The notes: generated by a model not told the origin, from the sequence alone. A stretch of DNA of 64,000 nt from Lepidodermella squamata (GCA_047495785.1 JBLDXI010000103.1:62001-126000); one strand, 5' to 3'. Shown: positions 32,546-53,585, counted from the stretch's first letter. Numbers and translations: made by a program.

Positions 32546-33051
32546 AATTTTTTTACTAAAATAATTTTTAAACACTATTAACAATATTTTTAATTTTATT
32601 TTCAATTGCGAAAAGCCCTTAAATTTTAGGTGTATAAAAGAAATGATAAAACTGTGACTTTGATGACTCATATTGACGATTAATAAATCCGACTACGACA
32701 GCCATACGTGCAGAGAGAAGGAATTTCGAGACATTCGATGCATCGGAGGAGAAACGACGACTGAATGGAGGCGATGCGAGGCCATTTGAGATTCTAATCA
32801 AGATTGTGCCGGGTATAATGTGGAACTAGAAACGAATCGCTGCAGCAGTCGAGGACGCTGCCGTCGAAAAACTTCCAACCTCGAGTGTCGCGACACCCCA
32901 GCTCCGGGACTCCCACCATAGGAAGGTTGAAAAAACCACAGGGTGGGCCCTTTGATTACTTCGGCTTCATTGCCCGCATCAAATTTGTGTAATCCCGGGA
33001 AGCGGTTATCACCCCATTTTCCAGAGTTCTGTTGATCAACTCGGTGCATTT

Positions 33052-33305
33052 CGTCGGCGCCGTGCAGTAATGTAGCTTAACCATGCTATACGCACATTGG
33101 AAAATAAATTTTCTTATTTTAACGAATTTTGCCTCGAAACTGGTATCAAAATGACCGTCTTGATGCGAGGATAAAGAATATGTAAAATTTGTGGCATTTC
33201 GAGCGTCCAGTGCCACGTTAAAGCTGTTTGAGCGGTTTTTCGTCCGCGTACTGTTATTATTATTAGTGTGTGTGCAAATGCATATGCATATATGATGGCC
33301 GCATG
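33052..33305 (+). repeat. Left terminal inverted repeat of the Sola1 element
   Basis: Reverse complement of about 51580-51826; it explains the near-identical spurious ORFs 32956-33216(-) and 51548-51844(+). Confidence 0.9.
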
Positions 33306-33892
33306 TAGCATCTTTTCCCGCCGTTGTTCTTTTTTCTTATTAATGCTTTGATATCTTTTAGGCTTGGGGTTAAGGTTCGGTATCTCAAAGGGTATCTCAA
33401 AAATATTTATGTCTTAGTTTTTTCTGAAATCCGCCCATAAATAACTTCTGCTGATAAAAATAAATGTTTCGTAATCTCAACAACCGTTTGACAAGTGCAA
33501 CCGATGTGCAATAAAAACGACATTACTTTTATACACCTCGCCTTCTCCCATCAATCAATTCATAACTAAAAGTTATTGCCATGTACTAGCCCTCGGAGAG
33601 TTTGTTGTGAAGCGAACCTAGCTGTTGCAGCAACGCCGAATGAACTCAACACATCATTTTAATGCGCAGCTATGAGCCGAGGGAGAATCAAAGTCGCAAA
33701 ATTGCATCGTTTTCAGAAAGGTGTCAATAGCAATATTTTTGCATAAAATAAAATTATCATTCAGCGATAATAAAACAAAACTCAGGGTTTAAAACGATTC
33801 TTTTCTTACAAATAATTATTTATTACAATAATAATAATATGCAAATGCAAAAGAGACACTTTCGGACTAGAAATTTCGCGTAAAAAGAGACA

Positions 33893-34638
33893 CTACAAAA
33901 TTACAAAAAGATAGTGGATAAATAGGTTTTTTTTACGAAAATGAAGATTGATTGATTGATTGTTGATGTCATCGCTCATTTCGATAGGTTTTTTGCTAGC
34001 TGTTTGCAACCACTGGCTATTAATCCAGCCGCAATCAACATTTTAGTCAGTTGCCATATAGCCAGACCCTTGATGTTGGAATAAAAACAATCACAATTTG
34101 AAAATCAAACGCGTTAACTTTAACTTACTTGAGCGGCATCGGAGTAGCCAGATGCAAATCGCTAAGATGACAAGAGCAAATAGAACCCAAAGAATGACCG
34201 AATAAGCGTCGGTAATATTATTATCCTGGTGGGACAGAGAAAAATGGTTAAACTTCGTGATTAAACTCAGGTACATTCAGAACAAACCGGTAAAATCTGT
34301 GAGCAATCTTTCGAAATGTTCAGCACGCTGTTCGTTAGATAGGACACTGACAGGGTCTGTGCGTTTGTTGGCGGGGTCTTTGTTTTGTCTGTTGCTGTTG
34401 TGGAAGTTGTTGATGTTGTTGTTGTTATTGTTGTCGATTCAATGAGACTGCGACATACTCTGCAACTGCCAGACTTGGCGCACCATATGATATTGGCATC
34501 TGTAAAATCATTGCTGTAAGATTTTTCTAGCAAAAACTGGCAAAAAAACTTGCCAGTGGGCTCAAGACAAGGCGGTGATCCCGATATCGTCTCCAACATA
34601 AAAACCGCCAAAATCCAACTATTAGTAAGATTAATCAT
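33893..34638 (-). CDS. Small Cys-rich type I membrane protein (transposon cargo)
   Basis: Signal peptide; Cys module (FTDANIIWCAKSGSCRVC); Thr-rich stalk; GT-AG intron; TM AYSVILWVLFALVILAICIWLL followed by RCR. A possible third exon gives FKFQWLQ, similar to FKFQKVIRWLQ in 48091-48441. The 3' end is uncertain. Confidence 0.65.
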
Positions 34639-34908
34639 CGTTAAACTTTACTATTCAATAGAAAATTATTTGTATCATACTAAATTCAGCAGTAAACAGG
34701 CAACAGAGAAACTCAGCAAACGTTAGCAGCTGAAATCCTACGTAAATTATGAGAACGGTCAAAGCAATGATGCTCATTTGAACAGTAAAAACTGGCAACT
34801 GACTGTCTGTTACCCAAATCACGAAGTCAGCCCTAAACCACTAGCGGGGCTTTGATGGAAGTTGTTTGATTGATGTCAAGTTTGTGCGAAATTTGCTGAA
34901 AACTCCAC

Positions 34909-35220
34909 TTGTCACAAGTAGAAAACAATCGGGCCAGTTTGTTACGAGTAGAAAACAGATGTGCCTATTTGTTACGAGTAGAAAACAAATATTGGAGTCG
35001 CAGTTTAACACTTGACAGGATGCTCCAAGAAGCCCAGTTTAAGATGACTTGGTCTCGACAGTAAGAGAGCCTCCCGGGCCTTCGTGATGACAACTTTTCA
35101 AAGGATTCAACATTGCGCGCGAGTGGACACTAATGGTTTAAAGTATAAGTATTTGTTACGAGTAGAAAACAAATAGGTCAACTTGTTACGAGTAGAAAAC
35201 AGATGCATCAACTTGTTATC
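34909..35220. repeat. 30-bp-period minisatellite with conserved core TTGTTACGAGTAGAAAACA
   Basis: Three units at 34909-34990 and two full units plus a partial one at 35153-35220; the ~11 nt between cores varies. Confidence 0.7.
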
Positions 35221-35567
35221 AGTCCTAAACATACGGATGAACTTGGATGCATTGATGGGTTAGTCATTTTTTGGTCATTTTACAGGATCTAGAGGTTAAA
35301 GACAAACCTCTCCGAGTAAGTTAAGCGATGGAGATGGAAAATTTAGTTATAGTTCACAAGTTACTAGTTGCTACAAGTAGTGAAGAACAAGCCGAAGTCT
35401 CACAACAGATCTTGCAAATTAAATCAAAATAAAAGCTTTAAAACGATTTCGAGGCAAATCTTCGGCGAAAATGAAAATGAAATTTCCCACGCATGAATGC
35501 AATGAGAGAGACTTCTTTATTATTTTGTTTCGTTCGACGACGTCAACTGAGACTTTTTTGTTGAAAT

Positions 35568-35732
35568 GTATGTATGTATGTATGTATGTATATTAGCGTT
35601 GGATTCGCACTAAGGCGGTCTTCCATCCAACGGACGCAGATGGGCGCGTCGAGGTAAGGTGGCGAGTTACCTCTTCTTTGTGTAGACGAAATCGTCCACG
35701 TATTCTGCTTTCAGCAGTACTTTCAGGAGTTA
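35568..35732 (-). mobile_element. Short retroposon 3' end with (CATA)n tail, copy 1
   Basis: About 135 bp nearly identical to 40885-41043, next to an (ATGT)n tract. Confidence 0.65.
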
Positions 35733-36129
35733 GCGAAACTCCTAAAACTTGAAAATAACCCGCCAAAAGACGTTCTTGGTTTTCAAATGAAATAAAATAA
35801 ACAAGAATTTTTTAATTACGTTATATTATAATGCTAAAATTAATTGAATAATGAAAAAAGCACAGCCTAGCACGCCGACGGCCAGCCTAGCACGACCGAT
35901 CGCCGAGCAAAAAAAAACGTGCTAGCAAGCTTGCCTTCTTTCACTTTCATCAACTTGATCTTGCGAAGCATACTTGCGTGGAAAAGTCTTTGTAGTCTGA
36001 AATCTGAATAATCTGAAATTTTCTATTGGTTAAAATAAGTTATTTTTCCAACAATATGGCTTTTATTGCATAGGTTTTTCATTTGATTTTTGTACTTTTG
36101 TACTTTTGTACTTTTGTACTTTTGTTGTA

Positions 36130-38052
36130 ATGGCTGAATTTTTCCGTGGTGTTTTGCCGCCGGCCGTTGGATCGCGTGCTCTCGCCAACGATGGCGTGGT
36201 CAACGACGGTGTGGCCATCAGCGGCCATCAGCGGCAATCAGACGATTTGGCCATCAGCGGTGTGGTCATCAGCAGGGAACAGCACAACTCCAACAGCACA
36301 ACGCTTGTAGGTTTCATTTACATTTTTTTATTTTTGTTACCATTTCGAATGCTCTTGATCATGCATTAAACAACTTTTGATACTGTTTCCTTCAATTGAG
36401 CCTTTTCCATTCATCTGTTACATAATACTGTAAAGCCATGAATTTCTTGTTTAGCGAATTTAATTTCTGCGTGACCGATTTTTACACCCATTTGCAAAAA
36501 GTCCTCGTAGGACATATGATTTTACATTATTTGTATTGTATTTATTTGGAGTTTATTTGTATTTTCAGGAGCATCAGTATTTCTACATAGCGATAATCGC
36601 CGTCACCAGCGTAACCGGCGCTATCGTAATTTGCTGCTGTTGCCTGTACATATTTACAAAAACCAGAGCTCTACGTGCTCGAATCGTCGGTAAGCTGTAA
36701 TTAATTTGCTTATTTTTTTTTATTCATGCTTTCTACTTCAGGCTGCCTCCGAGAGCGCGCCTTTGTTAGCGTTGACATTGGTTTGTTTGTTTTAGTTGCT
36801 AGATTCTTGTAATATTTTTTTCAACTCTAGAAACGATTCGCGGCGCGGTTTCGCCGTTGCTTGATAGTGTAGCAACGCCGTTTCGGCGTGCGTTCGCTCA
36901 CCTGAAAGACTTAAAAGATGCTGGGCAATCTGTTGCTGGTGCCAGCTCACCGGATGAAAACATTGGTAAAAGCTGAAACCCGAAATCGTAATTATCATGA
37001 TTATTCGTTTTTGCAGAATCTTGCGAATTTAAGGAGCCTGATCATCCTCAAGTGCCAGGTTTTGATTTGATTATCACACATTTCATTTGGCTAACATTGT
37101 TTTACCTAGGATCTTCTGAGATTGGGCCAACTCCTCGTGTCCCCGTGAAGCATGCTCGGGTCTGCGATGCCGATGCGAATGCCGCTGAACTCCGCGCCGC
37201 TAATGCCATGCGGCTCTTTCACATGGCGGAAGAACAGCGTGCCCGCCAAGAGGCGGCTACGCATGAAGCTGTACATTACGCTCGCGCGGCAGAGGCCCGT
37301 GCGGAGGTTGCCAATGCGCGAGCTGCGGCTGCCGAAGCACGGGTCGCTGCTGCAGAGGCGCAAGTTGCCGAGGCGATGGGCCTTCTACATGCCATCGAAA
37401 ATGCGATTACCGCTGAGCAGCAGCGGCTGGCTCAGTTACATGCTCAGTTACATCCGCCCAATTTCCATCTAACGCCTGGTTAGTTAACAATATTTTACAC
37501 CCTGTTTTTATAATTTATATATTTTTACAGGAGAGGAGGTTTCGGTCGATACAAATTTGTTCTCTACCCCAACGGCTCGCTCGCTCACTGGAAACAACGG
37601 TATCAACGATTTGTTATGCTTGTTAATTTTGTTTTAAAGTCTGAATTGGTTTTATAGACCCTACTAATGCTGCGCTGCCACCATCTTCATCTTCATCATC
37701 TTCAACTTCATCTTTACCGGAATGTCGACCCGACTTATCAGGTTCAGAGTCTGATCATGCTCCGGCTGCTTCGACTGCTCCGGCTGCTTCGACTGCTCCG
37801 GCTGGTTCGACTGCTCCGGCTGGTTCGACTGCTCCGGCTGGTTCGACTGCTCCGGCTGGTTCGACTGCTCCGACCGACCAGAAAAACATGCAGGACGCTA
37901 CAGCCGTTCGTTGCTACTGCAAAACCGGCTGTTTAGCCCAGTGCGGCTGCCGCAAAAATAACCGGCGTTGTAGCCCGGCGTGCTTCTGCGTAAGGTGGTT
38001 TAACTGTCAAAACACTGTGACAGTTAAACCACCTTGCGCAGAGGGCAATTAG
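36130..38052 (+). CDS. Membrane-anchored coiled-coil protein with a C-terminal CXC (tesmin/TSO1-like) domain (transposon cargo)
   Basis: Eight exons joined by GT-AG introns read through without stops: MAEFFRG...NSNSTTL|EHQYFYIAIIAVTSVTGAIVICCCCLYIFTKTR (TM), Ala/Glu/Arg coiled coil (about 37180-37450), (APAAST/APAGST)x6, then CYCKTGCLAQCGCRKNNRRCSPACFCVRWFNCQN; stop at 38050-38052. Confidence 0.75.
37759..37872 (+). repeat. 18-bp coding tandem repeat, about 6 copies
   Basis: (GCTCCGGCTG[C/G]TTCGACT)n. Confidence 0.9.
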
Positions 38053-38459
38053 ATTGGTTTGATCTTTGCTCTCAGATCGCGTGCTCTTCAGTCATAGAAC
38101 CATTAGATTTGTCAATTAAATTGCTGCGACATTCATAAAGTTGAGCATGCTGCTCAGTTTCAAAAATTGATTTGCTCCTCGATCTTATTTTTGATTGTAG
38201 ATTTTCGATTTTTTTGAACGATCATCTTCTTCTTATTTCTTATTTTTCTTCTTACTCGCTGCGTTAATAAATCTTCAGCATTCTTCGCATTCTTCAGCGT
38301 TAAAAAACGCTGCGTTTGCTTATTATTTCTTATTTTTCGATGGTTTTAACTCTTGATCATTTGATACTCGCGCCTGAAAAACTATTGTTTTTGACCGGTT
38401 TCGACTCTTACTTACCGTGATGCGGATAAATAAATACTACAAAATATAACTGCTCAAAT

Positions 38460-38605
38460 GAGACGTGGCAAGCGATTTCGGCCCTATCTCTATCTTCGCA
38501 GTCATTTGAAAATTGGGTGTTGCGCAATAATGATTATGCGTCAGCTGTTGCCTTTTCAAATGCCTGTGAAGATAGAGATAGGGCCGAAATCGCTTGCCAC
38601 GTCTC
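38460..38605. mobile_element. 146-bp MITE with GAG...CTC termini and a 4-bp AAAT TSD (Sola2/Sola3-like ends)
   Basis: AAAT|GAGACGTGGCAAGCGATTTCGGCCCTATCTCTATCTTC...GAAGATAGAGATAGGGCCGAAATCGCTTGCCACGTCTC|AAAT. Confidence 0.85.
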
Positions 38606-39479
38606 AAATGAATAATATCATAATATGTCGCCTAGTTGTTTCGCAACGATTATAACTCTTACGCCTGTTATACAACTTTTTCATCTTCTTCCTTCGTCTT
38701 CGTGACTGCCTTTTCCTTCGTGCCTTTTTCGTCGTGCCTGCCCTAATTTGATATTTTTTCATCTTTTTGACTCTTGCTCGTATTTTTGTTACTGCTTCGA
38801 ATCAAAACTCTTGCTGTTACGAGTTACGAGTTAGTTGTTGTTAGAGTACTCTTACTACTCCTGTTATTGCTTGACACTGTTTTGGCTCATACCTTACATC
38901 AAATTGCTCAAATTGAATATTTAGTCAAATATTTGGAATATGAATAATATTTAGTCAATAAATAGTACGATTTGGTAATTTGATAATTGATCTTTTCATT
39001 GTTTTTCATTCGAGAATCGGCGACTTTGCTGCCACAGGATGTACCATATATGCCGCAATAACATGCCATATATGCGCGGGGAAGTCGAATTTTCCTCATG
39101 AAAATGACCCGCGCGATTGTTCAAGTCAAGTTCTTAACATGAGCTGTCGATCGGTTCACTAAAGTGTGCCAGCTTTCAAATATTGGCACTGATCGTTCTA
39201 TTCATTTTGGCAATGCGAACATCAAATTCAAATCGAAAAATAAGTTCTCCCACGGAGCCGTCTGAGTCATCCCATCATTATCGAACAAGAAAATGAACCT
39301 TTCTAGCTGCAAACAGTGAATTTATTCATAACTTTCTCCTCAACACTTCATCAACACTATAATTTTAACATAACATAACTATATAATTTCAACACTGTAA
39401 TTATTGTTCTAAAATATTATAATAATGAATGCTCTGGAACAGCGCATAAATCTAACGTTTAGGTAAAGCAAAAAAATAA

Positions 39480-40285
39480 TCAAGTTTTCGGGTTACAATA
39501 ACAGCAAAACCACTTCAGCTTTACGATTGACTGAAATTGCGAGAACTCGCGATTGGTCAGCAATGAACAAGTTTTGTGAAAATACATATGGCAACAAGAG
39601 CACTCAATAGACAATTGTTCTTTTCGCGAATTAGGGTGGCTAAGATCTGAGAGACAGGCTCCGCAAGGCCATTGATATTTCAACTTTTTTGAGATAGATA
39701 CAGGAAAATGCCGACATGACCGTTTGGTGAAATTTTGAAGAACGTTTGATGACGCTGGACGGCGCCTATTGAAGGAGCCTAGGTCTCGATGTAGCAGCTG
39801 CCTTATGAAATCCTGAATCCGATCAAGGCTTGGAGTCGTTAAGAACGGGTTGTTTTCATTCATGGCTGACAACTCTTCGTGTATTTTCGAAGCTGTTTTT
39901 AGCCTGAAGTTTTCTTCTATAAACGCCTTACTGCCAACTGACATTCGAGAGATTTGGTATGGTAATGGATGAGTTGGATGGCTATTAGCAGAGCGTTGGA
40001 ATATCATTTCTCCGTTATCATAAATCGTCAATAAGGCCGTAGATCGACACTTCTCACTCGTTGTTTCGGCTAAGAACCTCCCATACCCCCTACAGCGAAA
40101 ATAAAAAGAACGTCTTCCAGAACCTGAAAAAGACTTATTATAATTAATCGAATATACCACATGTCCTGATTCTCACCAAGTTTTCTGGAATAGGTGAATT
40201 GAAGTTCTGGATAATTATCTTGTATATACTTCTTAGCAGCTAGAATTGAAGCACCAGCAGCAAATTTTACTTGGATTACATGCAT
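39480..40285 (-). CDS. WRKY/GCM1-like zinc-ribbon plus PHD finger protein (transposon cargo)
   Basis: Two exons with a phase-1 intron (gtgaga...ttcag): YSRKLG|SGRRSFYFRCRGYG...KCRSTALL...SHPTH, then a C4HC3 PHD (CGAC...IECSCCHMYFHKTC...WFCCYC). Confidence 0.75.
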
Positions 40286-40604
40286 TTCGATTTAAGTAGT
40301 ATTAATCATCCCTAGAAACTAAGAAGATGTGACAGGCGCAAAGAAGCCGTGCGCAAAAAGCATTAGCAAAAAAATCAGCAAAAAAATCAGGAAAGTTGGA
40401 GGGCGCCACAACAGCCTATAATCAGTGGCTTTTCCACTCACTCAGCGAAGCCTACAAACGCCGTCGTAGCAAGAAAGCTACCAGAAGACTTATTTGGAGA
40501 ATGATTTACAAAAGTAGAGAATATTTACATGAGGTAATTCCACGGAGCCAAAAATAGAGTATTATTTAACGCCGGAACTATAAGACACTACTATACTTCC
40601 AGAA

Positions 40605-40884
40605 CTATAAGAAAATAAAGTGTATTATCATCGGCTTGACTAGCGACGAGGGTGCCTCGTGCCTCGGGGTCTCAGGATCCCTGCTGCACGTCCACATGGT
40701 TTTAGCCGGGTGGAGCAGTCGTTTGCCTGGCACATTCACCCATCGCAATCGCAGGAGAACTTCATCAGGACTGACGTCGAGAACGGCACGAACGGCTTCG
40801 TTTTGCGCGTGTTGAAGACGATCCAGCTGGGTCTTGCAACCTTGATCGATGACGGCGTCGCAGTAGTTGAACTTCGACCCATCA
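40605..40884 (-). mobile_element. LINE RT C-terminal fragment related to the 16199 element
   Basis: NYCDAVIDQG...LDRLQHAQNEAVRAV...LRWVNV parallels NYGDLTLGQA...LAKLQSTQDRAVRII...LGWVNV. Confidence 0.7.
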
Positions 40885-41043
40885 TGTATGTATGTATGTA
40901 TGTATGTACGTTGGATTCGCACTAAGGCGGTCTTCCATCCAACGGACGCAGATGGGCGCGTCGAGGTAAGGTGGCGAGTTACCTCTTCTTTGTGTAGACG
41001 AAATCGTCCACGTATTCTGCTTTCAGTAATACTTTCAGGAGTT
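40885..41043 (-). mobile_element. Short retroposon 3' end with (CATA)n tail, copy 2
   Basis: Near-identical to 35568-35732. Confidence 0.65.
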
Positions 41044-41363
41044 CATCTCTGAGGATCTTCGGGTTTTCGGAAGATCTTATTGATGGCGGTAAGTCATTCC
41101 ACTTGCTAGCAGCACGAAATCGAAAGCTGAGATGGTGAGCTTGTCGAGGGATCAATTCATTTTTAGAAGCTTTTTAATCTTGAAGTTTATAATTTCTCTT
41201 TCAAAATGAATATCAAAATCTTTCAAGTTATGAATGTAAAATTACATTTTACCAGATTTTTATTCTCTAATAAGGGCCTTGACAGAACAAAAGCTTCCTT
41301 TGTCAATCATCCACTTTTGGCGCGCTTCGTCTTGCGTTCATTTTTTCGACTCCTTGTTGCAAA

Positions 41364-43038
41364 ATGAATGCTACGACATATTATCTGATAACAATTATCG
41401 CCATCTATGCTCATGTCGATGGAAAAATTGAAAAACGCACGGTGAAACTATCTCCTGTTTTGGAGAACCCTCTTGCTGATGCGCCAGATATCGACTGGGA
41501 AAATGTGACGGATGGGTTTTTTACCGGGCCAGTAAATACCGAGTGTGAGACAGTAGCTTACATTTGGGGTAAGTATTTGGATTCATTTTCGAACATTGAT
41601 CGCTAAAAAACATGTTTTTCTCTAAAGAGGGGCATTACTATCTTGGAAAACTTATGGCTGTAAAAACGGGCAAAGATAAACGAGACTGTGGAGATAAGGT
41701 GAGCCCTTTAACCTGACTTAAACATCATTGGGTTCGTTTTCATGACTCAGATCATCAAAGATATGAAGGAGGTTGTCAAAAAAACATTTCCTCTCACTGC
41801 AGATGATTTGGTGAGCAAATTATTTTAGTGAACATGAGTTAACTCAAGTGAATTTTATTGTTAGAAATCCTACACTTTCCGGATTCTTGTATGTATCAAT
41901 CCCTCTTATGAAACTGCCTGCAAAGAGGGAGCTGATATTTTGGCTTGTATGAAGGTTATTTAATTGCTTAATCTTTCAATTTGATGAATTTCTATTAAAA
42001 GGCCTTTGACGAGAAGAATACTGGAAACTTACTCCCTGGATTGGTATGTAATAAGCATTTTTCCAGAGCAGTTTGCTCATTTGATTTATTCTCAGATATC
42101 CATAGCTTACTTTATCGACTTCGCTGAGGACACAAGCTGCATGCTGCGTAGCTATTCGAAGGTGTGGCTTACTCAAACGCTATGGGATCTCAGTGTTTCC
42201 GTTCCGGTGAGAGAAATGTTCACAAACTGGATACCAAGTTTAGTCAGGGCCATTTCTTTGGCTCATACCCCTATTCAATCCACGCTTGAATATTTTGCGA
42301 AAAAATCCACCCTGGTCCGGGAAGTTTTAGCTCAGGTACGTTTCTGGCAAACGATGATCATAATTTTGACTTTAATTGTCTTAGATTTCAATTTTTATCA
42401 TCAGAAGTCCGAATTTTTCAGCCTATCAGTGCTATTTCTACATCGTGGTAGCTTTGTATCTATTATACCAATATTACTACTCGGGATCAGATTCTATGCG
42501 AAACAGGCTACTAATGCAACTAATGCTACTGGCGGTCTGCGGTGCCTTGGAATTAGTTGTAACAAGCTATGCAACCGAGATAAAGATTTAAGACACGGTC
42601 ATAGTAACCCAATTTGTCGCTCTATCGCTGCGTTATTTATATGTGAGCGAGCTATATCTTAACCGACCTCTGATGTGGTATTTATCTCTCATTTACATCT
42701 TATCTTTTTTGGCTGTTGCGCGCATGATTGAGAAATACATGAATAGAGAAGATGGTGGTGGTGGTGGTGTGACAAACGATTCAGACCGTGAGGTTATTGC
42801 TACTAATAAAATTGAGCCCATAGTTAATTTGAAAACTACTGAAACAAGTAGCAGACTAGCCTCCGATCCATCTTCGTCTGTCTTGCGATCTGGAAGAAGA
42901 ATCGTCCATAGCGAAAGCAGTCGTGTCATTGCCGAAGAAAAACGTGACGTGGGCAACAATGAATCGTCATCTAAGAGCGAAGAAAGTCGTTCAAGTATTA
43001 TTCAGCCTTTGATCAATCGCTTTCGGCCATTTCGATAG
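41364..43038 (+). pseudogene. Brambleberry/GEX1/KAR5-like nuclear-membrane protein (cargo; one in-frame stop)
   Basis: Six exons: signal peptide; Cys domain RDCGDKIIKDMK...LTADDLKSYTFRILVC...ACKEGADILACMKAFD...AYFIDFAEDTSC; then 3-4 hydrophobic spans (YFYIVVALYLLY...RNRLLMQLMLLAVCGALE...) and a Ser-rich basic tail. TAA at 42589-42591. Confidence 0.6.
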
Positions 43039-43411
43039 TATAGATCTTGCTACTTTAACCAGCAACAAGGAACTCTTTAGCAAGGAACTCTAGCATGTTG
43101 TAGGTAACCTAAGGAAATCTCCGCCTCTGGCTTTTTATTGATAATTGATATTGATATTTGATATTGCAAAATATTGCGTTTTATTAGTAGTCCTTTAACT
43201 CTTGTGCGCGAATCTAGCCAATTAATTATTATTTTGTGGTTATCATCTTCATTTTTCCTTTTTGCACGCCTTCTAAGAATGTAAATTCACTGTCAATTAT
43301 AATAAAATACAAGTGTGATCTATTATTTGATAATTATAGCTACCCACAACTAAGAAATAAATGTTTAATTTTCTAAATTTCTCTCACATTTTAGTCAGTT
43401 TTATTTATCGT

Positions 43412-44912
43412 ATGGCATACCGCAAATTTCACGCAGAGTTTAATGTTCTAACGATAATTTGGAGCTCAGCAATTCTATCTGAGGCATTCTGTTTAACAAC
43501 CAACAACTGCGAAAATTTCGAAGAAATTAGTGTTCCGCCGTGGGCCCTCGTTGAGGATGGGGCATACCAGATTTCCTTTTCAGACTATTCGCCGCCGATC
43601 CCTTCTCAAGTGTGCTTAACTAAGTCGGAATTATGGCAACTTAATTATTTATTTTGGATAAACAAGGTAAGGTTTTGGTTTGCCTTTTGGATATTTAATG
43701 AAAAACTTTATGCCAGTACCGAATAATACCAGCATCAATACAAGATGTGGCTAAATTGGAGATTTATACTGGCAACGATTGCTCTGAAAAGCTCGCTGCT
43801 AGATGCTGTGCAGTAACTGCAAACCGTCGTTCGCCCGGCATTCTTCAGATTATGTCACTATTTCTACCAAGCTTATTTGATGCATCAGACGAGGACGATA
43901 AAGATGCCTTCGAGACGGCGCTTGTGTCGGCCTTTGATTACTACAGCATTGCTATATGCCCCTTGAATTCGACTGTCGATCTGCAATTGGCTGAAAGTTA
44001 TTTTGATTTTAATAATTTCATTGTCACGCTAACAGGTGTTCTAATGGTTGTAGCATCGAAATGGCTAACTGAAACGAATCTAGCTTATTATAGTTTTTGT
44101 TCGATGAGCGGAAGTTAAGCGGGGATAGCTGCTGCGTTTTATTTTATATCACAATTGTACAATACTAAAAGGCCTGTTGCCTATGTGTTGCTGTCATTTA
44201 TCGCTGGATCATATGCCTCTTTTGAATACCTAAATTATACGATTGATAATGCACATAATATTTTATACGCCTTAATATTTTTGTGTTCTTGCTCTGCGTT
44301 TGTTATTTCTTGGATAAACGGTCCTTTGGTCTCGAGTAGGCCGAAAATGGCGATAAACGTTGTTTTGATCATAACGGGCTTTTTTTAATATATTACGGAA
44401 CCTCATTCAAGCCACAACATACAGCGTTATTTTTCGTGCCAAGTTTTACCTTTTTAGTTTATTCCAGCTTAAAGAATACAATTTATATGAGCCTAGCCCT
44501 AATAACTGGAAAAAAATCCGTGGAGACTGGCCCTGGAGTTGCCGTAGTTGGGAATGGTCTTGACGATGCGATAGTTGGCGCTAGCCCCAAATCTAAAGCC
44601 CCTACAGCTGTAGAGACTGAACAAGTTCCCAGCGTGGTAGCTGTAGGTCTTGCAGGAGAAGGCAGAATAGATACGCCGCCTACCAGACTCATTGCTTTTC
44701 CTTATATTTCTGAAGCAGAATTTGAGTATCAAAGTATACAATATACCGCTGAACAGCTAACTGCCTTGCGCAATTTTGCTACCGCTAATATGGCAACCGT
44801 AGTTGCTAGGATAACCCATCTTCGTCAATTTATGGCATTTCTAACCGGAGTTAATTTATATGTAGTTAGACAGGAAGCCCAGCCGTCCGCCCAGGCAAAT
44901 GATGTGCAATGA
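43412..44912 (+). pseudogene. NEMP (TMEM194)-like inner nuclear membrane protein (cargo; one stop and one frameshift)
   Basis: Signal peptide; intron 43667-43716; TM region FDFNNFIVTLTGVLMVVASKWLTETNLAYYS...NGPLVSSR; C-terminal ISEAEFEYQSIQYTAEQLTALRNF...TVVARITHLRQFMAFLTG. These match the NEMP1 motifs LSRSxxFYYS, YGPLxxxR and LTEEEYxxQGxxETxKALxELRxF...VSRIxSPxRFAxFVEG. TAA at 44116; 1-nt loss in the T-run near 44385. Confidence 0.8.
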
Positions 44913-45455
44913 CGAACATTATTATAATCTCACATGAATATGATTTATAATGCCATTATGATGAAGGTCCCGCAATATTTTTTGCATGCAATCTTTGGAC
45001 TTTCTCAATGTTCTTGCGTTACCTATAAAACCGAAAACAACTACAGTGCAAGTCGTCTAAATCGGACTCGGGTCGCGCTCGGGCCGCGCTCGGGTCGCTC
45101 GGGTCGCTCGGGTTGCGAATTCCAGACTCCCAAAATCCGTCAGGTTTATACCACCAGACCGGTTGAGAATGAAGTCCACACTTTTGGACTCAAAAACTTC
45201 CGGTTTAGACAACTTTCACTGTATATTATAAATATTATACCGATCTCATCTCACAATAAAATTATATTGTATAAGCTAGAAAGTATTTTTTATAAAAGTT
45301 TTCTTATATTTCTTATTGCTTCTTTGTTTATTTCTCCGTTTTCCGCACATTAACCAACAATTAAACCGTTAAACAACTCCGTTAAAAAGTGTGATGTGCA
45401 TTTCAGCTATTTAAATTTATTCTAACTTTAGTCGATTAATTTTTTGAGAATATTT

Positions 45456-45794
45456 ATGGCCACAACGACTTGTCGGGAGGCAACGATTGAGGAGATTGAA
45501 CGTTGCCGTTTATTCAATCTCGATTGTTCGGGTCTATGCCCCGCCTTTAACCCGACAACGTCGCCAGCCAACAATGTGCCGCCTGGCCTTTCAACCCCGA
45601 TGTTGATTGGTCTAATATGCGGGGGGGTAGTGCTTTTGTTAGCAGTCGTGGCCGCGACAGGGGCTGTAATCGTCATTTGTCGGCGCAGGCGTCGTTATGC
45701 CCCTATCGATCAACATCATCAATCTACAATTCAATTGTGCTTGTTCGCGTCGAACGAACAAGGCGCTGCCGATGAGAATGCTGTAACAGCCTGA
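45456..45794 (+). CDS. Small Cys-rich single-pass membrane protein, subfamily A copy 1 (cargo)
   Basis: C-x10-CRL-x4-C-x3-C, Pro/Thr linker, TM, RRRRRY, LCLFASNE...VTA. Confidence 0.75.
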   Translation: MATTTCREATIEEIERCRLFNLDCSGLCPAFNPTTSPANNVPPGLSTPMLIGLICGGVVLLLAVVAATGAVIVICRRRRRYAPIDQHHQSTIQLCLFASNEQGAADENAVTA

Positions 45795-46011
45795 TCAAAA
45801 CATCGACTTTGTTTTTACCTAGTTTTTTATGGCCTTGCCTGTTACTTGCCTGTAACTTAACAATAATTTTTCGAAGAATTGATTGTTCCTTAATTCGTGC
45901 AAAAAATGATATATATTATTGAAATATTATTATAAATATTATTAAACCATAAATAATTGAATTATTTTCGTTTTTTTAGATATTACATTCAATCTCGTAT
46001 TACATTCTCAA

Positions 46012-46250
46012 ATGCCTTGCGTGTCATTTAGTTTTGACGACCTGGTAAAATGCCGCCTTGAATTGTGAGACAACTGTGATAATTTCTGCAATGGGGCGAC
46101 TCCCATCACAGAGCCTGGTGTTTCCACCACGTCCGGCGCAGTAACCTCGCCTAGCCTGACTTCTAGCCTGGTTTCTACCACAACACCCACCACACCCGCT
46201 GCCGATACGCCGAAAACTGACGAAAAATCTATTGGTCGTTTTTGTCGTTT
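46012..46250 (+). pseudogene. Small Cys-rich membrane protein, subfamily B copy 1 (disrupted)
   Basis: MPCVSFSFDDLVKCRLEL*DNCDNFC...ADTPKTD is paralogous to 48091-48441; TGA at 46066 and the TM is lost. Confidence 0.7.
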
Positions 46251-46394
46251 CAACTTCCACTGCTACTTCCCCTGCAATTGTAAACTTTGGTTACCTGAGT
46301 CAACAGAGATGAAATCTCTCTCTCTCTCTCTCGTTTTTATCGAAATCATGAGCATGAAATCACGAAGTTCATGTTCAAGTCATGTTCAACTCCT

Positions 46395-46632
46395 GGGAGT
46401 TCCTGTTCTACTAGTCAAATTGAAAATCGCACAGAGCGTAAAATGCGAGCTTGGGTGCAATCACCGCGCTTCATCGAATCAAGAAGGGAGTTCCTGTTCT
46501 AGTCAAATTGATAGTCACAGAGAGCGTAAAATGCGAGCTTGGGTTCAATCACCACGCTTCATCGAATCAAGAAGAGAGTTCCTGTTCAAGTCTGACTGAT
46601 AGTCACACATGCCGTAAAAGGCGAGCTTGGTT
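46395..46632. repeat. Tandem repeat of about 90 bp, roughly 2.5 copies
   Basis: gagttcctgttc...cacagagcgtaaaatgcgagcttgggt...cgcttcatcgaatcaagaag is repeated. Confidence 0.75.
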
Positions 46633-47552
46633 TTTGTATCAGTATTAGTCTGATTTAGTCTTCCTCATTGTGTTGGAAAAGAAAAAAAAATTAGTCGGTA
46701 TAATCGAATTCAGAAACTCAGATGTACTCGATGTGTTAGATAAACGGAATTTCCATGGCCAATCGGAGACATTTCCGCAATCCGATATACTACAGGATTT
46801 GTGCCCAATTTTCAGATTTCTTCACCGGGGCCAGTGATGCGCGAAAACATTAGCGGCTGATGTGGAGAAAACGTCTTTTCTTTGCGCTTATAAAGCCCCG
46901 CTTGAATTCCTCAACTGCTTCGACAACTGTCGCGTTTCATGACAACTGTCATGTGGAGAACCAGGCCAGACTATTCCAAGTCCTGACTTCGGCCGGACTT
47001 CGGAATTTTTAGTAGTCCAGTCAGTAGCTTCGTCCAAAACGCGTCTGCATATTACGCGTCAGCTTCGTCCTTTTCGTCCGGCTACGAGAAGTTCAGTAGT
47101 TCAGCTTGCCAGGAGTTTGCCAAGGTTTCGATTCTCTAAACGAAAAATCGATTCCATGTGACAAGCATCACAGGTCTGGATATGCTTTTGTATGCAATTT
47201 TGATGGTAGAATTGTTTCCGCATTTTTGAAAATGGAATAAGTTCGCGCAGTTGATTTATAACATGCGAGAACAACGGCCGTGAATACACATACACTTCTC
47301 AAAGATTGAAATAGCGGACGGAACCCAGCTCAATTTGGAGCTTAAGAATTTATAGAAAAATAGCTTCTATAGAAAAATGTAAGGGCCGAAAAGTGTGCAC
47401 TTGGAGAATGCGAGGGACTAGAAAATCGAATGGACTGAGTGATCGTGATTTACGAAAAATTGAAATTGCTTGCATATTTAAATTTATCGAATCGAATCAA
47501 ATTTGTGTTAAATAATTGCATTTATTAAATTTTAGTGTTCAATTTTTATTAA

Positions 47553-47891
47553 ATGACTTGCATTCCACCGTCCGCTGAAGCCTATGAGCGATGTCGATTG
47601 TTGCATGTCGACTGCAACATATGTCCGCCATCAACAACGAGCTCGGTTACAACCTCAAACCCCTTGCCGCCTTCTCCAGCTGAGACGGGATTGTCTAAGC
47701 TGGAAATTGGTCTGATCTCAGCGGGGATCATTATCATTGTTATCATTGTTATCGTTGTTATCATTTCTGTCGTATATATTCGCCGTCGACGGCGTTATTC
47801 TCGGCTTGAGCAAAGCCTTCCGCTTTGCTTGTTCGCCTCTAACGAAGAGGCCGAGGGGAATGCCGAGGGGAATGCCGAAGTTACGGCATAA
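47553..47891 (+). CDS. Small Cys-rich single-pass membrane protein, subfamily A copy 2 (cargo)
   Basis: MTC...ERCRLLHVDCNIC, TM, RRRRRY, LCLFASNE...VTA; clear paralogue of 45456-45794. Confidence 0.8.
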   Translation: MTCIPPSAEAYERCRLLHVDCNICPPSTTSSVTTSNPLPPSPAETGLSKLEIGLISAGIIIIVIIVIVVIISVVYIRRRRRYSRLEQSLPLCLFASNEEAEGNAEGNAEVTA

Positions 47892-48090
47892 TATTATTCT
47901 TAGTTTATTACTTTGTATCTTGTATCTTGCCATATAATAAAGTATTGCCATAATATTATAATCTTGCCATATTACTTGCCATGTTATTTGCCGCAGTATA
48001 TAATGTTAATTTTATTATTTCATTCGGTATTAAATGATCTATCGATAAAATTCCTGCCTGTTTCCTTTTAGAAATTAAAAAATTATTATT

Positions 48091-48441
48091 ATGGCCGATT
48101 GTGTCCCGTTTAGCGAGGATGCTGTAATAAAATGCCGCCTTGAATTAAGTGCCAGCAGTTGTGTATTCTGCGACACGACTTCTACGACAGGCACCTCCAT
48201 TACTACTTCCACCACGCACGCTGGCGATACGCCGAAAACTGACGTTTTGATTATAGTTTCAGTTGTCCTATCGGTCATCGCCATTGTTGGTGTCGCTATT
48301 CTGGGATTCAAGTTCCAGAAGGTGATACGCTGGCTCCAAAATGTAATTAGCCGAAGTCGGCGAGGTTTGGAACGGCTGCACATATACCGACTTGACGGGC
48401 GTATAATTGACACAATCGAGCTACCTGAAGATAGCTTGTAG
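48091..48441 (+). CDS. Small Cys-rich single-pass membrane protein, subfamily B copy 2 (cargo)
   Basis: MADCVPFSEDAVIKCRLELSASSCVFC, Thr-rich stalk, TM VLIIVSVVLSVIAIVGVAILGF, basic amphipathic tail. Confidence 0.75.
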   Translation: MADCVPFSEDAVIKCRLELSASSCVFCDTTSTTGTSITTSTTHAGDTPKTDVLIIVSVVLSVIAIVGVAILGFKFQKVIRWLQNVISRSRRGLERLHIYRLDGRIIDTIELPEDSL

Positions 48442-48570
48442 AATTTTTTTAAATTATTCTGCTCATATCTGCATAATATTTCTTGATCATTCGATTCATT
48501 TAATGATACATCTTGGTTATTTCAAATGCTGTAGGAAAACCTTAAAATATTGGCGATTTAACTGATTATT

Positions 48571-51184
48571 ATGAGCCTTCCATCAACATCGGCTGCGACT
48601 AAGGTCGCTGATTTGGAAATCCCCGTGTTTCCCAATGATAAATTAAAGAAACCGATTCGGCGAGTAAAAACAGCTTGGGTCGATGAGGAGAAGCGAATGA
48701 GAAATTCTGGAGAATCATACGTGAGGAGGGAAATTGTTGCTAAAGACCGAGATACTGGCGAGCTGCGAAAGAAACGAAAGTTATCTGTCGTTCGGAAACG
48801 CGAGGGCAAGCGGCTGTTGAACTGCTGCAAAGAAAAGCGATGTTGGGAAAAATACACGGACGTGAAAATAGCAGAACTGAGTCAACAGTTTAGGTCGACT
48901 GGGTCCATCTTTGACCAACGTCAGTTTGTTGGGAGATTTGTCTCAAAGGATTTTGTCAAGTTTCGAAGTAGAATTACCTACACACTACCTGCAATTTATG
49001 CTACGGAGAAATTCCGAGGGAAAGCGGCAAAAATTCAGCGGATTACTGTTTGTCGCAGGTTTTTCGAGTCTGCCTTGGATGTTACGAATCGCTTTGTGTC
49101 TTACACTTTGGAGAACAAGCTTAGTCCCGACCAGTTGACTGTTTATCCGGACTTTCGGCGTGCGAAGAAAGAAGGGGGCAGAAATACCTTGAACGAGTTG
49201 ACGAGAAATTCTGTTATCAATTTTGTGAAACCGCGCTTAAAAGCGTAAGTTTCTGGCAAGTTCTATTATGAAAATGTAAATGATTGGTTATTTTTTTCAT
49301 AAATATAATACAGAAAACTAAGCCATTATCGAAGAAAAATTTCAAAGAGATTTTACGTATCAACAAGCATTACAATTGGAAGTCTCTACAGCGACTGGGT
49401 GGCTAACATACGGTCTGCACCTCAGCTTGGCGTTCGCCGATGCAATTTTGAGTCATTCCGTACGCTATTCCGTACCCATTTCAGGTGAGTGCATAATATA
49501 TGCAACTTGCCGCCGTTTTCTGAAAGCATCATTTGCATTATTATAATATACAGATCTGTCTCGTTCCAACAACCCAGAAATGACAAGTGCAAAATAATGA
49601 AAAGATTTTGCACAAATTTCTGCTTTCTCGATTTTATATTTCATTTTCTTAGGTATGCGCACGGTGGAATAACATGACGGATGCGCAAAAAAATCGTAAT
49701 CGTGCCAAGCACCAGCAGCATCTCAATGAAAAGGACGCAAGCCGAGAATTTCGGCGTTTGCGGCGTGAAAGAGCGGAAGCATCAAGGCAGCCAGGTTTTG
49801 CTGGACGGAAAAGCGCAATAATTGAGGTGATGCTTTAATTTGACAATTCTTGATTTATGAACATCGTTTCATTCAAGGTTGATGCTCAGTCAAAATTGCG
49901 CACTCCTTGCTGCGCTTTTCCCTACAAGCGGAAGCTGATAACAACCAATTTTACGATTTTTGACCTCACTGAGCGGACCACATTCAATTACTTGTTTGAA
50001 GAATTTAATGGTAGAAATTTGTTGGAAAAAATAATTCTTTTTGTCTTGAAACTGGCCAACTTTTATCTTTTCAGGATCTCTGGGTGCCGCTGAAATTGGG
50101 TCTATTCTGCACGATTATATTAAGAAGCATCTCGCTGACGATATTGTGGAATTGACAATTGTCTCCGATTCGACAGTTGGAGCTGGAAAGAATCGGTTAG
50201 TTTAATTATTGATGAAGATTTTTTTGTATCATTAATCAGGTTTTTATTGTTTAGCTTCATTCCCAACGCAATTTATCATACGCTCAGAAAAGTCAACTTC
50301 GAGCGTGTTCAACAAGGCAAGGAAAGGCTACGCTTTGTTGATTGGCTCTTTCTAGTTCCTGGTATGTTTTTAGTCGATGGGAAACTACCGACAATTTTGA
50401 ACTATTTATGGCGTTTCAGGACACACTACAATGACAGTCGACGCAATGCATAGCTGCATAGAAAAGTCCCAGAGAAGATTTGGCTCCGTTACCGACCCTG
50501 CTGAGTGGCGCGAAATTATCAAAAGTGCTCGACAAGGAAATGAAAAGGAGAAATTTCAAGTCGTGGAACTTGACTGGAGCTTCTTCTCTGATTTTCGCCG
50601 AAAGCCCAATTATTGGACAACTCTACAAAACAGCAGCAAATTTCGCATTACCGAATATCAATTTTATCGGTTCAAGATTAAAATCGGAGAGCATGAACTG
50701 TGGGCCAGAAAAAGCTATGTCGATATAGCTACAGATGGCACAGGCCCGCTAACTCCAGACCAGCGAATGCTGACAGACAAGGATGAGGACGAAAAGATAC
50801 GTTTTGATGTACACCTCACTCCTGTGAAGAATAAAGGTCCATTTGGTTATGATAACGGTAGGTAGATAATAATAACTTGCCTTCTCTGCTCGTTATTTTA
50901 TTTGTTATTTTATCATGACTGCTGAACCTGAAAAAGTGTACACTGGGCCGCGAAACCTCACGTTTGATAAAAAGATGGATTTGCTGTCTTGGATTGCGGA
51001 TGGTGTTATTCCACCGCGAATGCTTGATTACTTCAAGGCTCTACCATGTGACATTTCTTCAGAGGAGAAACGCCGGGCATATGAAAATCGGCTAGCCCTG
51101 ATTCGAGAAAAATATAAAGACAACGAATGGACAGCCGATGACGTGGATATGGCAGACGAAGAAGAGCTTGTCGACAGGCTTTGA
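48571..51184 (+). CDS. Sola1-type DDD transposase, intron-containing, probably inactivated
   Basis: Spliced motifs: VCRRFFESAL, SHYRR, NDKCK|VC, IIE|VDAQ..L.TP...YKRKL...NFTIFD, GAAEIGSILHDY, LTIVSDSTVGAGKNR, FLVP|GHTTMTVDAMHSCIE. The expected donor at 49594 reads ataatg instead of gtaatg. Confidence 0.85.
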
Positions 51185-51579
51185 ATTTTGGTATTGGTGT
51201 TATCCTCGTATTATATATAATATATAGTTTTACCTCTTGTTTTAATGGTTTCAATTATATTATTATTATTATTATTGTGCAGAAATTGAAATAAATTATT
51301 TGTTGTGTTTTAATGAAAACATGCGTTCATTAAATGCGTTGTTGTTGTTGTGTCTTTGAGCGGCTTCTGGTCAACGATGATAAACGGTGAAGAAAATCTT
51401 AGATAGCAGGCACTTGAGAACAACATTTTCAGGGGAATTTTATTATTCTTCTCGTATTTTACGTCAAGTCTCAATAAATTTTTAGTTATCGGAGCTACCT
51501 GTTACGCACAATGCAACGCAAAATAACAACGAATTTCCATAAAAGTTATGTCGCCTGCCCGCCCATGCTTTAATAAGCG

Positions 51580-51826
51580 CATCATGCACAACAACATACA
51601 TATGCGCACACTAATAATAATAATAGTACGCCGACTGAAAAACCGCTCAAACAGCTTTAACGTGGCACTGAACGCTCGAAGTGCTTCGAATTATATATAT
51701 TCTTGCTCATCGCATCAAGGCGGTCAGTATGACACCGGTTTCGAGGCAAAATTCGTCAAAATAAGAAAATTTATTTTCCAATGTGCGTATATCATGGTTA
51801 AGCTACATTACTGCACGGCGCCGACG
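51580..51826 (-). repeat. Right terminal inverted repeat of the Sola1 element
   Basis: Reverse complement of 33052-33305, followed by the ATTT TSD at 51827-51830. Confidence 0.9.
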
Positions 51827-53585
51827 ATTTGTAGATCCGAGTGAAATTGGAACTGGACCAAGCGATGCCGACTATTTTTTCAGTTCCGTTTGAGTTACAG
51901 ACGATCAAATAGCCCACTGAATTAGAATCAGATGAACCGTAAAATGAGGTGCAATCGGATCCAAAATTAATTTTCATCGAAACTTCCTGATACTTATCGA
52001 TCAAGCTCCAGAATACTTTGAAGCGTTGCGCAAAAAAAACAATTTTCAACTACCTTCAGGTATTCAGGTAGTAACCAGTAACTGTTAAATTTCGGCACCC
52101 ATCGACATCAGCTGGCCCTCCTTCGAGTTTTCTTTCGTTCAAAACAGCCAAAAAGGAATGGAATATCTGAATCGAACTACTGATCGAATCTTACTAGTGG
52201 TTCCACCATGAATTTGAGATAGGACAAACGGCGCTTGTCCGAAATCGCTGCCGAGACGCCAGTCCTTTCAGCTGATTAAACCGGACCGAATCCAAGTTAT
52301 AGCAAGTTTAAGAAATTGAGCTGGTTACTCAAAATCACGTAACTTTTTTATAACTAAGTGAGTTTTGGGCTCCATTGAGCTCTAAAAAGTCCCTATTTCA
52401 ACTGGGCCAGCTGTAAAATTACCCAGATAGTCATGAATCTCACGAAAAAGGTCATTTTTCGCCACAATTTGTGGCAGAAGAGACTTGCGCAAGCATACTA
52501 CGGATAACAAGCTATAGCTTTTTCACTTGCTTGCGAGCTTGCTACGTGTTGTCCTAGGCTTTATTTCATGCCAAAGTTGTCGAATTAATTTTTGAAGTTG
52601 ACTTCTAACCCTCTGAGTGTAAAATGATCTATCTGCTCTTCATCACTGGACTGAGGTCTCGCTTTTTTGGCTAATATTGGGAGGGGGTGTGCCTATATGG
52701 TATACCTTCTCCTTATCTCATCATCGTGTCGCAATGGGGCATATATCTATGTCCCAAATTATTGCCAGAGATGCCTGGAGCATGCCGGGATAGTGATCTG
52801 TCAATTTTTTAGGGTTTGGGAGCGTCCAGAGTTTGCCTTTGATTTGTACGAAAACTAGAATTTAAATTTTTGATCTTTAATTTTTAAATTTTAAATTTTA
52901 AATTTTATTTCCTTTGCAGACGCTTACTCTCTGCCTTCTTGCCCCCTCACTTCAAAACGCATCAAAACAAGTCTGGTCCACAACTTTCTGGAAATCGACG
53001 CCATGTTCGACCGATACACGAATAACACGAGACCTGTTGACTATGAAAATCGTTTTTCCTGCCAGGACAACCTACTGTGATGACACTTGACGAATCTGAG
53101 AAAGCTCTGATAGATCCTACGTCTCAAGTTGTACTTCTATGGGTTTCTATGAAGTTTCCTTGGCCAAAATAATGCAGTCTTAACTGGTTGAAAAATGAAT
53201 TGAACGATAATATTGAAATATTTCGATTCGGACATTGGATAACTTGTTATTCTTCGAATTAATTTAAATTCTCCTACAAAGAGATGGATTTTATCCAGAC
53301 TTTTGTCATCTGTAGCTTTGCATTGCCAAAGCCAGCTGATTACCACCGCCAGGCTCACCGCCAGGCTCACCGGCCGCCGTCTTTCACGGTTTCCTCTAAA
53401 CAGATAATTTCACGTAACTTATCAGACTACTTATCAAACTAATATTATCTACGTTCCTGCTCGCAACATTGCATCCGAGTGCTCGATAAGATAGCAGAAA
53501 ATAAAATGGAAATGTGTATTCTGTCCGTCAAGGCAGTTTTGATTTTTTTCTGCTCTTAAAGACTGACATTTTTTGCACGGGTACA

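Follow-up and report, generated by a model that had tools for sequence, protein, structure and literature searches.

A transposon-borne, spliced membrane-protein gene of Lepidodermella squamata, paired with a NEMP-family gene and possibly related to KAR5/GEX1/Brambleberry

The spliced gene, its product and the state of the window copy

The window, a stretch of 64,000 nt from Lepidodermella squamata (GCA_047495785.1 JBLDXI010000103.1:62001-126000), was analysed together with the surrounding genome of 121 Mb in 151 contigs, and gene positions are counted from the first letter of the window. On the forward strand, 41364-43038 holds a gene with seven exons and six introns of 47–59 nt, all of them GT-AG and all keeping the frame (Table 1). 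Once spliced, a single frame is open over 453 codons, with the exception of one TAA triplet. A sequence-only reading of the window had proposed a spliced gene concealed by five introns. The gene is real and the peptide motifs quoted from it are found in the spliced product, but the introns number six.

Two public runs were found to contain the stretch, denoted X1 (a DNA contig) and X2 (spliced contigs). A 1280-nt spliced contig from X2 skips exactly introns 4, 5 and 6, the last at joint 42335/42385, and extends to 43279 in the 3' UTR, while loose ends of the X2 contig connect 41698 with 41751 and 41810 with 41865. Five of the six introns are thereby seen spliced in reads, as had been proposed for verification of the junctions. 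Intron 1 lies outside the read coverage, and its junction is supported by homology, the uninterrupted AYLYEGFY of the paralogue on C4 matching the spliced AYIW/EGHYY (slash, exon junction). As the X2 contig lacks the introns, X2 is derived from RNA, and the gene is expressed and spliced by the host as modelled.

The genome has five copies of the gene including that of the window, at 99.7–99.9% identity. Position 42591 is T in the four other genomic copies, in the X1 DNA contig and in the X2 spliced contig, which gives TAT (Tyr), and the intact form, e.g. on C32, encodes 453 aa. Thus, the TAA noted at 42589 in the sequence-only reading does exist in the window DNA but belongs to this one copy and not to the gene as such. 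The window copy also has a private Y213H change, and is a recently inactivated copy. Similarly, the NEMP-like gene next to it carries a TAA at 44116-44118 (TTA>TAA at 44117) and has lost 1 bp near 44379, lesions that are confined to the window copy, the other copies and the transcripts being intact. Since private lesions are found also in this neighbour, the whole window element looks like a dying copy.

The product has the layout common to the family, in which a signal peptide and one to three tandem Cys modules are followed by a short helical linker, by the membrane helices and finally by a charged tail. In the window product a hydrophobic signal-like segment lies at the N-terminus, and the six Cys predicted to be luminal are at residues 61, 89, 122, 131, 140 and 171. 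A signal peptide is indicated, by hydropathy only, also in the relatives on C4, C54, C11, C102 and C7. The linker of about 80 aa contains four Pro, its longest Pro/Gly-free stretch being 29 aa. Four membrane helices are predicted in exon 7, the first 127 residues of which gave a four-helix model (pLDDT 71), compared with three in the relatives on C54, C11, C7 and C102. Three helices thus represent the arrangement in most relatives, to which the window and C4 types add a fourth, and one Tyr, one Glu and one Arg are invariant in the membrane helices of six lineages. The signal peptide and the TM spans of the earlier reading are accordingly retained. Owing to the fourth helix, it is uncertain on which side of the membrane the tail of the window type lies. 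The tail itself is charged, rich in Arg and Ser, and ends R-F-R-P-F-R, an RXR-type motif.

Table 1. Coordinates of the gene, its carrier element and its relatives (unprefixed positions refer to the window)
Feature	Position	Strand	Remarks
Left terminal inverted repeat	33051-33241	.	191 nt, 91% complementary to 51637-51827; copies elsewhere in genome
Exon 1	41364-41568	+	Start codon, signal-like hydrophobic segment, family-specific Cys C0 (C61); junction backed by C4 paralogue
Exon 2	41628-41698	+	Cys Ca (C89), equivalent of C1 of GEX1/Kar5p; X2 loose end runs from 41698 into exon 3 bases
Exon 3	41751-41810	+	Canonical C2 (Cb) position, a non-Cys residue in window lineage
Exon 4	41865-41954	+	Cys Cc, Cd, Ce (C122, C131, C140), C-x8-C-x8-C; spliced X2 contig begins here
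Exon 5	42002-42043	+	X2 joints 41954/42002 and 42043/42096
Exon 6	42096-42335	+	Final luminal Cys (C171, Cf2), helical linker with NWIP...YFAKKS motif
Exon 7	42385-43038	+	Four predicted helices (Tyr, Glu, Arg invariant in six lineages), charged tail ending R-F-R-P-F-R
Nonsense codon TAA (Tyr305 to stop)	42589-42591	+	Private to window copy
NEMP-family gene	43361-44912	+	Adjoins the gene in every element lineage found; intron 43665-43714; broken in window copy
Transposase region	48571-51200	+	Homologues beside relatives on C4, C7, C11/C6, C54
Right terminal inverted repeat	51637-51827	.	191 nt
C54 relative	L031:1012-2748		578 aa, 2 Cys modules
C11 relative	L035:1009-2487	-	492 aa, 2 Cys modules
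C102 relative	L022:3586-5241		552-aa open frame, 3 Cys modules
C7 relative	L021:4884-6590	-	569-aa open frame, 3 Cys modules

The carrier transposon, its NEMP-family gene and the wider family

The gene sits within an 18.8-kb transposon with terminal inverted repeats (TIRs), 33051-51827. Collinear copies of the element are found on C19, C32 and C40, and short derivatives have the ends alone in common with it. A further locus, on C4, is collinear with the entire element at a protein identity of just 30–50%, with a matching order of PHD-like ORF, gene, NEMP-like gene and transposase. Its version of the gene is 29% identical over 305 aa (E 3e-31) and has decayed, as its frame shifts downstream of the signal peptide and is also interrupted by a TAG. 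In combination, the 191-nt TIRs, the five near-identical copies, the transposase and the collinear C4 element bear out the earlier assignment of the gene to a transposon.

Several other features of the element were recorded. A 226-aa ORF on the reverse strand (39480-40160) has a C-terminal Cys/His pattern of PHD-like type; it is 31% identical in the C4 element and gave no match in Pfam. Small single-pass membrane proteins, in each of which an N-terminal Cys motif is combined with one TM helix and a stretch of basic residues, are encoded at 45444-45794, 47553-47891 and 48091-48441, and the divergent elements on C4 and C54 have similar ones (L008:296-631, reverse strand, and L029:5877-6221). Because they recur in divergent elements, they represent a third conserved type of cargo. 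Just upstream of the gene, a fragment of a reverse-transcriptase-like ORF lies in 40605-41105, along with a run of (TGTA)n. The copies L004 and L005 part from the window upstream of about 41106-41151, and hence the region 5' of the gene varies between copies. The segment 46486-50275, which includes the 5' part of the transposase, is 91% identical to C32:1127152-1130948, as compared with 97–99% for the rest of these copies, a pattern that suggests recombination between element subfamilies. In the C54 element, the transposase region L029:4462-4866 gave a weak Pfam match to DUF7869 (E 8e-4, below the cut-off).

NEMP is a nuclear-envelope membrane protein that is needed for fertility in animals. 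An intact copy of the neighbouring gene (L017:4528-5724) matched the Pfam NEMP model (PF10225) with E 2.6e-13 and 50.6 bits against a cut-off of 28.7, and by this match the neighbour is a true member of the NEMP family. A six-frame NEMP search of the genome returned 15 matches, namely the canonical host gene on C9 (C9:3791409-3792122, 163 bits) and 14 others. At least nine of the NEMP loci are divergent, several of them beside transposase homologues, and the transposon copies reach 41–50 bits versus the 163 bits of the canonical gene. A four-copy NEMP set on C33, C17, C24 and C61 showed weak matches to the Cys-module and membrane profiles. A word-indexed homology search with a NEMP-like exon as query gave no match. 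The similarity to the NEMP (TMEM194) family lies in the adjacent gene, whereas the present gene itself has none. All element lineages found with a relative of the gene also have a NEMP-like gene, and this pairing gives the gene a nuclear-envelope context.

Relatives of the gene were located by the genome search with the NEMP model, followed by inspection of the loci on C54, C11/C6, C102 and C7. Such relatives occur in five or more divergent lineages of this transposon family, each time beside a NEMP-family gene and a related transposase. On C54, C11, C102 and C7 the relatives are intron-poor, and a membrane-domain ORF comes next after each. Their homology to the window gene is based on Smith-Waterman z values of 5–6 relative to shuffles, on HMM matches with E 1e-23 and 9e-19, and on the common neighbourhood and conserved motifs. 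Four divergent lineages have kept intact ORFs, a sign of long-term constraint, and the integrity of the ORFs in lineages 15–40% identical argues for purifying selection. The transposon family has thus long included this gene.

A profile of the Cys modules, searched against the genome, found no non-transposon copy but only degraded fragments; two apparent host copies, at C9:3886302 and on C74, were ruled out as degraded transposon fragments. Exon 6 is present in the five genomic copies at 99–100% identity, and in addition as fragments on C28 and C33. The latter loci, L006 (C28:1791954-1795094) and L007 (C33:235945-239139), were rejected as genes, as they contain exon-6-like pieces of about 45 aa (NWIPGL...YFAKKS) inside another repeat; the flanks of the pieces are similar at the two loci. 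A search for a retrocopy with the exon 3/exon 4 junction pattern found none.

Taken as a whole, the gene is a conserved accessory gene of a large TIR DNA transposon family. TIRs, recent multicopy amplification and ends-only non-autonomous derivatives are shared with other large cargo-carrying TIR DNA transposons. In contrast to these, the present elements carry a conserved set of intron-containing membrane-protein genes, and a literature search found no report of TIR transposons with such a set.

Comparison of the Cys modules with the KAR5/GEX1/Brambleberry domain

Members of the KAR5/GEX1/Brambleberry family are defined by a signal peptide, a six-Cys Cys-rich domain (CRD), coiled coils and two or three C-terminal TM helices (PMC4291462; PMC7586128; PMC9324357). 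Every orthologue is reported to have all six Cys of the CRD (PMC4291462), and one to three coiled-coil regions, forming a hairpin in GEX1 models, lie between the CRD and the TM helices. From C1 to C6 the spacing is 11/22/13/10/24 in Kar5p (Cys 56, 68, 91, 105, 116 and 141; PMC4291462) and 11/19/12/8/22 in plant GEX1 (supplementary alignment of PMC7586128).

The family-wide alignment of 12 transposon modules and its comparison with GEX1 are new here. Conserved Cys in the alignment are C0, Ca, Cb (often CxC), Cc, Cd, Ce and a CC doublet (Cf1, Cf2). The median spacing of the canonical positions is 13/19/6/8/25, with ranges of 11–14 for C1-C2, 18–20 for C2-C3, 5–8 for C3-C4, 8 for C4-C5 (5 in the C4 copy) and 22–29 for C5-C6. 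Four of the five spacings consequently differ by 0–3 residues from GEX1, whereas C3-C4 is shorter (5–8 vs 12–13). Under a null of equal span with the inner Cys placed at random, a fit of this quality has P=0.003 for GEX1 and P=0.008 for Kar5p, values that apply to a comparison family chosen post hoc. The six-Cys framework fits at the level of the transposon family, the window protein keeping four of the six. In the window lineage the C2 column is occupied by Lys, in line with the missing second Cys of the earlier reading, and the C6 column by Ser, and C1, C3, C4 and C5 are retained together with the family-specific C0 and Cf2. The losses are co-ordinated, as the window lineage has lost both Cb and Cf1, and module 2 of C54 and of C11 has lost both Cd and Ce, which suggests disulfide pairs C2-C6 (Cb-Cf1) and C4-C5 (Cd-Ce). 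The AF2 model of a Cys module from one of the relatives is all-helical, with six helices (pLDDT 84).

The register of the similarity was assessed with the residue sets of 41 conserved non-Cys columns of plant GEX1, read at the same Cys offsets in the 12 modules. At register 0, 121 of 492 cells matched, compared with 64.8 ± 7.0 when the non-Cys residues were shuffled, and registers shifted by 1–6 gave 36–78 matches. Permutation of whole columns, which allows for the relatedness of the modules, left the signal at z 4.8 (0 of 20,000, p<5e-5), and with the hydrophobic or polar class of the columns held fixed it was z 2.6 (p=0.007). Most of the signal derives from hydrophobic columns that follow C2 and C5 or precede C3 and C6, at positions i±3, 4, 7 and 11 from Cys on the face of the helices that bears the Cys, and is in part what would be expected of any helical domain with buried Cys. 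The polar columns are mildly enriched, with 39 matches vs 29.3 ± 4.9. The CWQxAY motif of plant GEX1 had no match in the transposon modules, and the window protein is the lowest-scoring module, matching at 7 of 41 columns.

Pfam, AlphaFold and homology searches were run on single exons or on the intron-poor relatives, and the spliced 453-aa protein was analysed in scripts. The profile comparison proposed in the sequence-only reading was negative for Pfam Tht1 (PF04163), with no match at E≤10 on single exons or on four contiguous relatives of 490–580 aa. Likewise, Tht1 searched against the six-frame genome yielded no candidate, a result that constitutes weak evidence since the control genomes were prokaryotic. 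Pfam Tht1 covers essentially the fungal branch, GEX1 and Brambleberry being placed under a PANTHER/InterPro model instead, and for this reason the Pfam negative does not settle the kinship. The sole Pfam match from single exons, a weak one to DUF4149 (E 0.013), was set aside.

Searches of the databases were similarly negative. Exon 7 of the intact copy gave 0 matches among 1.84 billion representatives, and word-indexed searches returned no match either with module 1 of C54 or with the C54 and C11 alignment, a query that was probably swamped by low-complexity words. A feature search of the ESM Atlas with exon 7 and with module 2 of C54 gave no usable match, and a metagenome scan found no relatives. 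The matches of the module profile to PDB sequences of polybromo were rejected as chance. Fold searches of the PDB and the Atlas with the model of the Cys module matched nothing, including, in the PDB, any known fusogen, and an Atlas search with the model of the membrane region matched only generic helical bundles. Among the PDB entries searched there is no solved structure of the KAR5 family.

The comparison can be drawn together as follows. Like GEX1, Kar5p-Tht1 and Brambleberry, the transposon proteins have an N-terminal signal peptide followed by an N-terminal Cys-rich domain, here luminal by prediction. With GEX1 in particular they share three C-terminal TM helices in most relatives, in the window protein an RXR tail as proposed for GEX1, and conserved hydrophobic positions that precede C3 and C6 and follow C5 in the same register. 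Unlike the family, they have no detectable sequence or profile similarity to it (Tht1 negative), they have 1–3 tandem modules in place of a single domain, and they are encoded by a multicopy transposon and not by a single host gene. The modules differ from GEX1 in the absence of CWQxAY and in a C3-C4 loop about 6 residues shorter, and from KAR5/GEX1 in their extra Cys (C0, CxC, CC doublet). In the window lineage, C2 and C6 are lost, and the window protein, with its 29-aa limit on Pro/Gly-free linker stretches, probably has no long coiled coil. The Brambleberry/GEX1/KAR5-like identity assigned in the sequence-only reading is supported in part by the Cys spacing and the hydrophobic register, both of which beat chance, but the negative Tht1 result, the lack of CWQxAY, the tandem modules and the retention of four of the six Cys count against it.

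Possible origin and function

With these points weighed, the Cys domain may descend from, or fold like, the KAR5/GEX1/Brambleberry CRD, a kinship that we put forward tentatively and at slightly below even confidence. It would then be a highly divergent offshoot, or a structural look-alike, of that domain. Almost as likely is that the proteins form an unrelated orphan family, lineage-restricted and encoded by transposons, of membrane glycoproteins of the ER or the secretory pathway, in which the Cys likeness reflects chance or the convergence of disulfide-stapled helical domains. Such an origin would account for the lack of any profile, sequence or fold match wherever searches were made, for the 1–3 tandem modules with CxC and CC doublets, which are undescribed for KAR5/GEX1, and for the apparent lack of a coiled-coil hairpin. 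It is also consistent with matching columns that are mostly hydrophobic and placed at i±3, 4, 7 and 11 from Cys, and with a KAR5/GEX1 comparison chosen after the fact. However, chance or convergence sits less easily with four of five Cys spacings within 0–3 residues of GEX1, and with a match that peaks sharply at register 0 and survives both column-permutation and class-matched nulls. The constant pairing with a bona fide nuclear-envelope family gene, and the GEX1-like three TM helices of the relatives and RXR tail of the window protein, likewise speak against it.

Quite improbable, by comparison, is a surface (envelope-like) glycoprotein that moves the element between cells or individuals, in the manner of the fusogens of other large mobile elements. 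A signal peptide, a Cys-rich ectodomain and a TM anchor would suit this function, as would the several small type-I membrane proteins carried by the element (45444-45794, 47553-47891 and 48091-48441). Against it, the 18.8-kb element showed no genes for a capsid, a polymerase or packaging, PDB fold searches show no likeness to known fusogens, and both the NEMP partner and the RXR-type motif favour residence in the ER and nuclear envelope. Least probable of all is a decaying, functionless fragment of a captured host gene, since the nonsense codon of the window copy, the nonsense and frameshift lesions of its NEMP-like neighbour and the frameshift and TAG of the C4 relative are countered by four other intact copies with correctly spliced transcripts, by intact ORFs with invariant Cys and TM residues in lineages 15–40% identical, and by the failure to find a non-transposon host copy in the genome.

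As a working model, the most likely interpretation is that the gene encodes an ER/nuclear-envelope membrane protein with a luminal Cys domain, acting with the NEMP-like partner. It is the CRD-like character of the Cys domain that would place the protein in the ER and the nuclear envelope, where this domain would face the perinuclear lumen. The protein and its NEMP-like partner may act jointly on nuclear envelopes in the germline or the early embryo, which would benefit the transposon. A role in nuclear fusion is something that we purely infer. In its fullest form, the proposal would be that the transposon family has retained, across deep divergence, a nuclear-envelope toolkit of its own, consisting of the NEMP homologue and a GEX1/KAR5/Brambleberry-derived protein, which acts on germline or cleavage-stage nuclei (e.g. 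in pronuclear or karyomere fusion) and thereby promotes transposition or transmission; we regard this as an unlikely, if conceivable, scenario.

Cut-and-paste transposons are normally thought to need a transposase alone, and a whole transposon family is here seen to retain an expressed, intron-bearing pair of membrane-protein genes, in one of which the Cys framework fits the sole conserved domain of the eukaryote-wide nuclear-fusion proteins. Should the link to the CRD prove false, the modules would still define a protein family that is new, has a helical fold predicted with confidence and is unmatched in the libraries searched. Should it prove true, these elements would be the first mobile elements known to encode nuclear-envelope remodelling factors, and they would provide a natural, fast-evolving set of KAR5/GEX1-like domains, with tandem repeats and lost disulfides, for dissecting the role of this domain.
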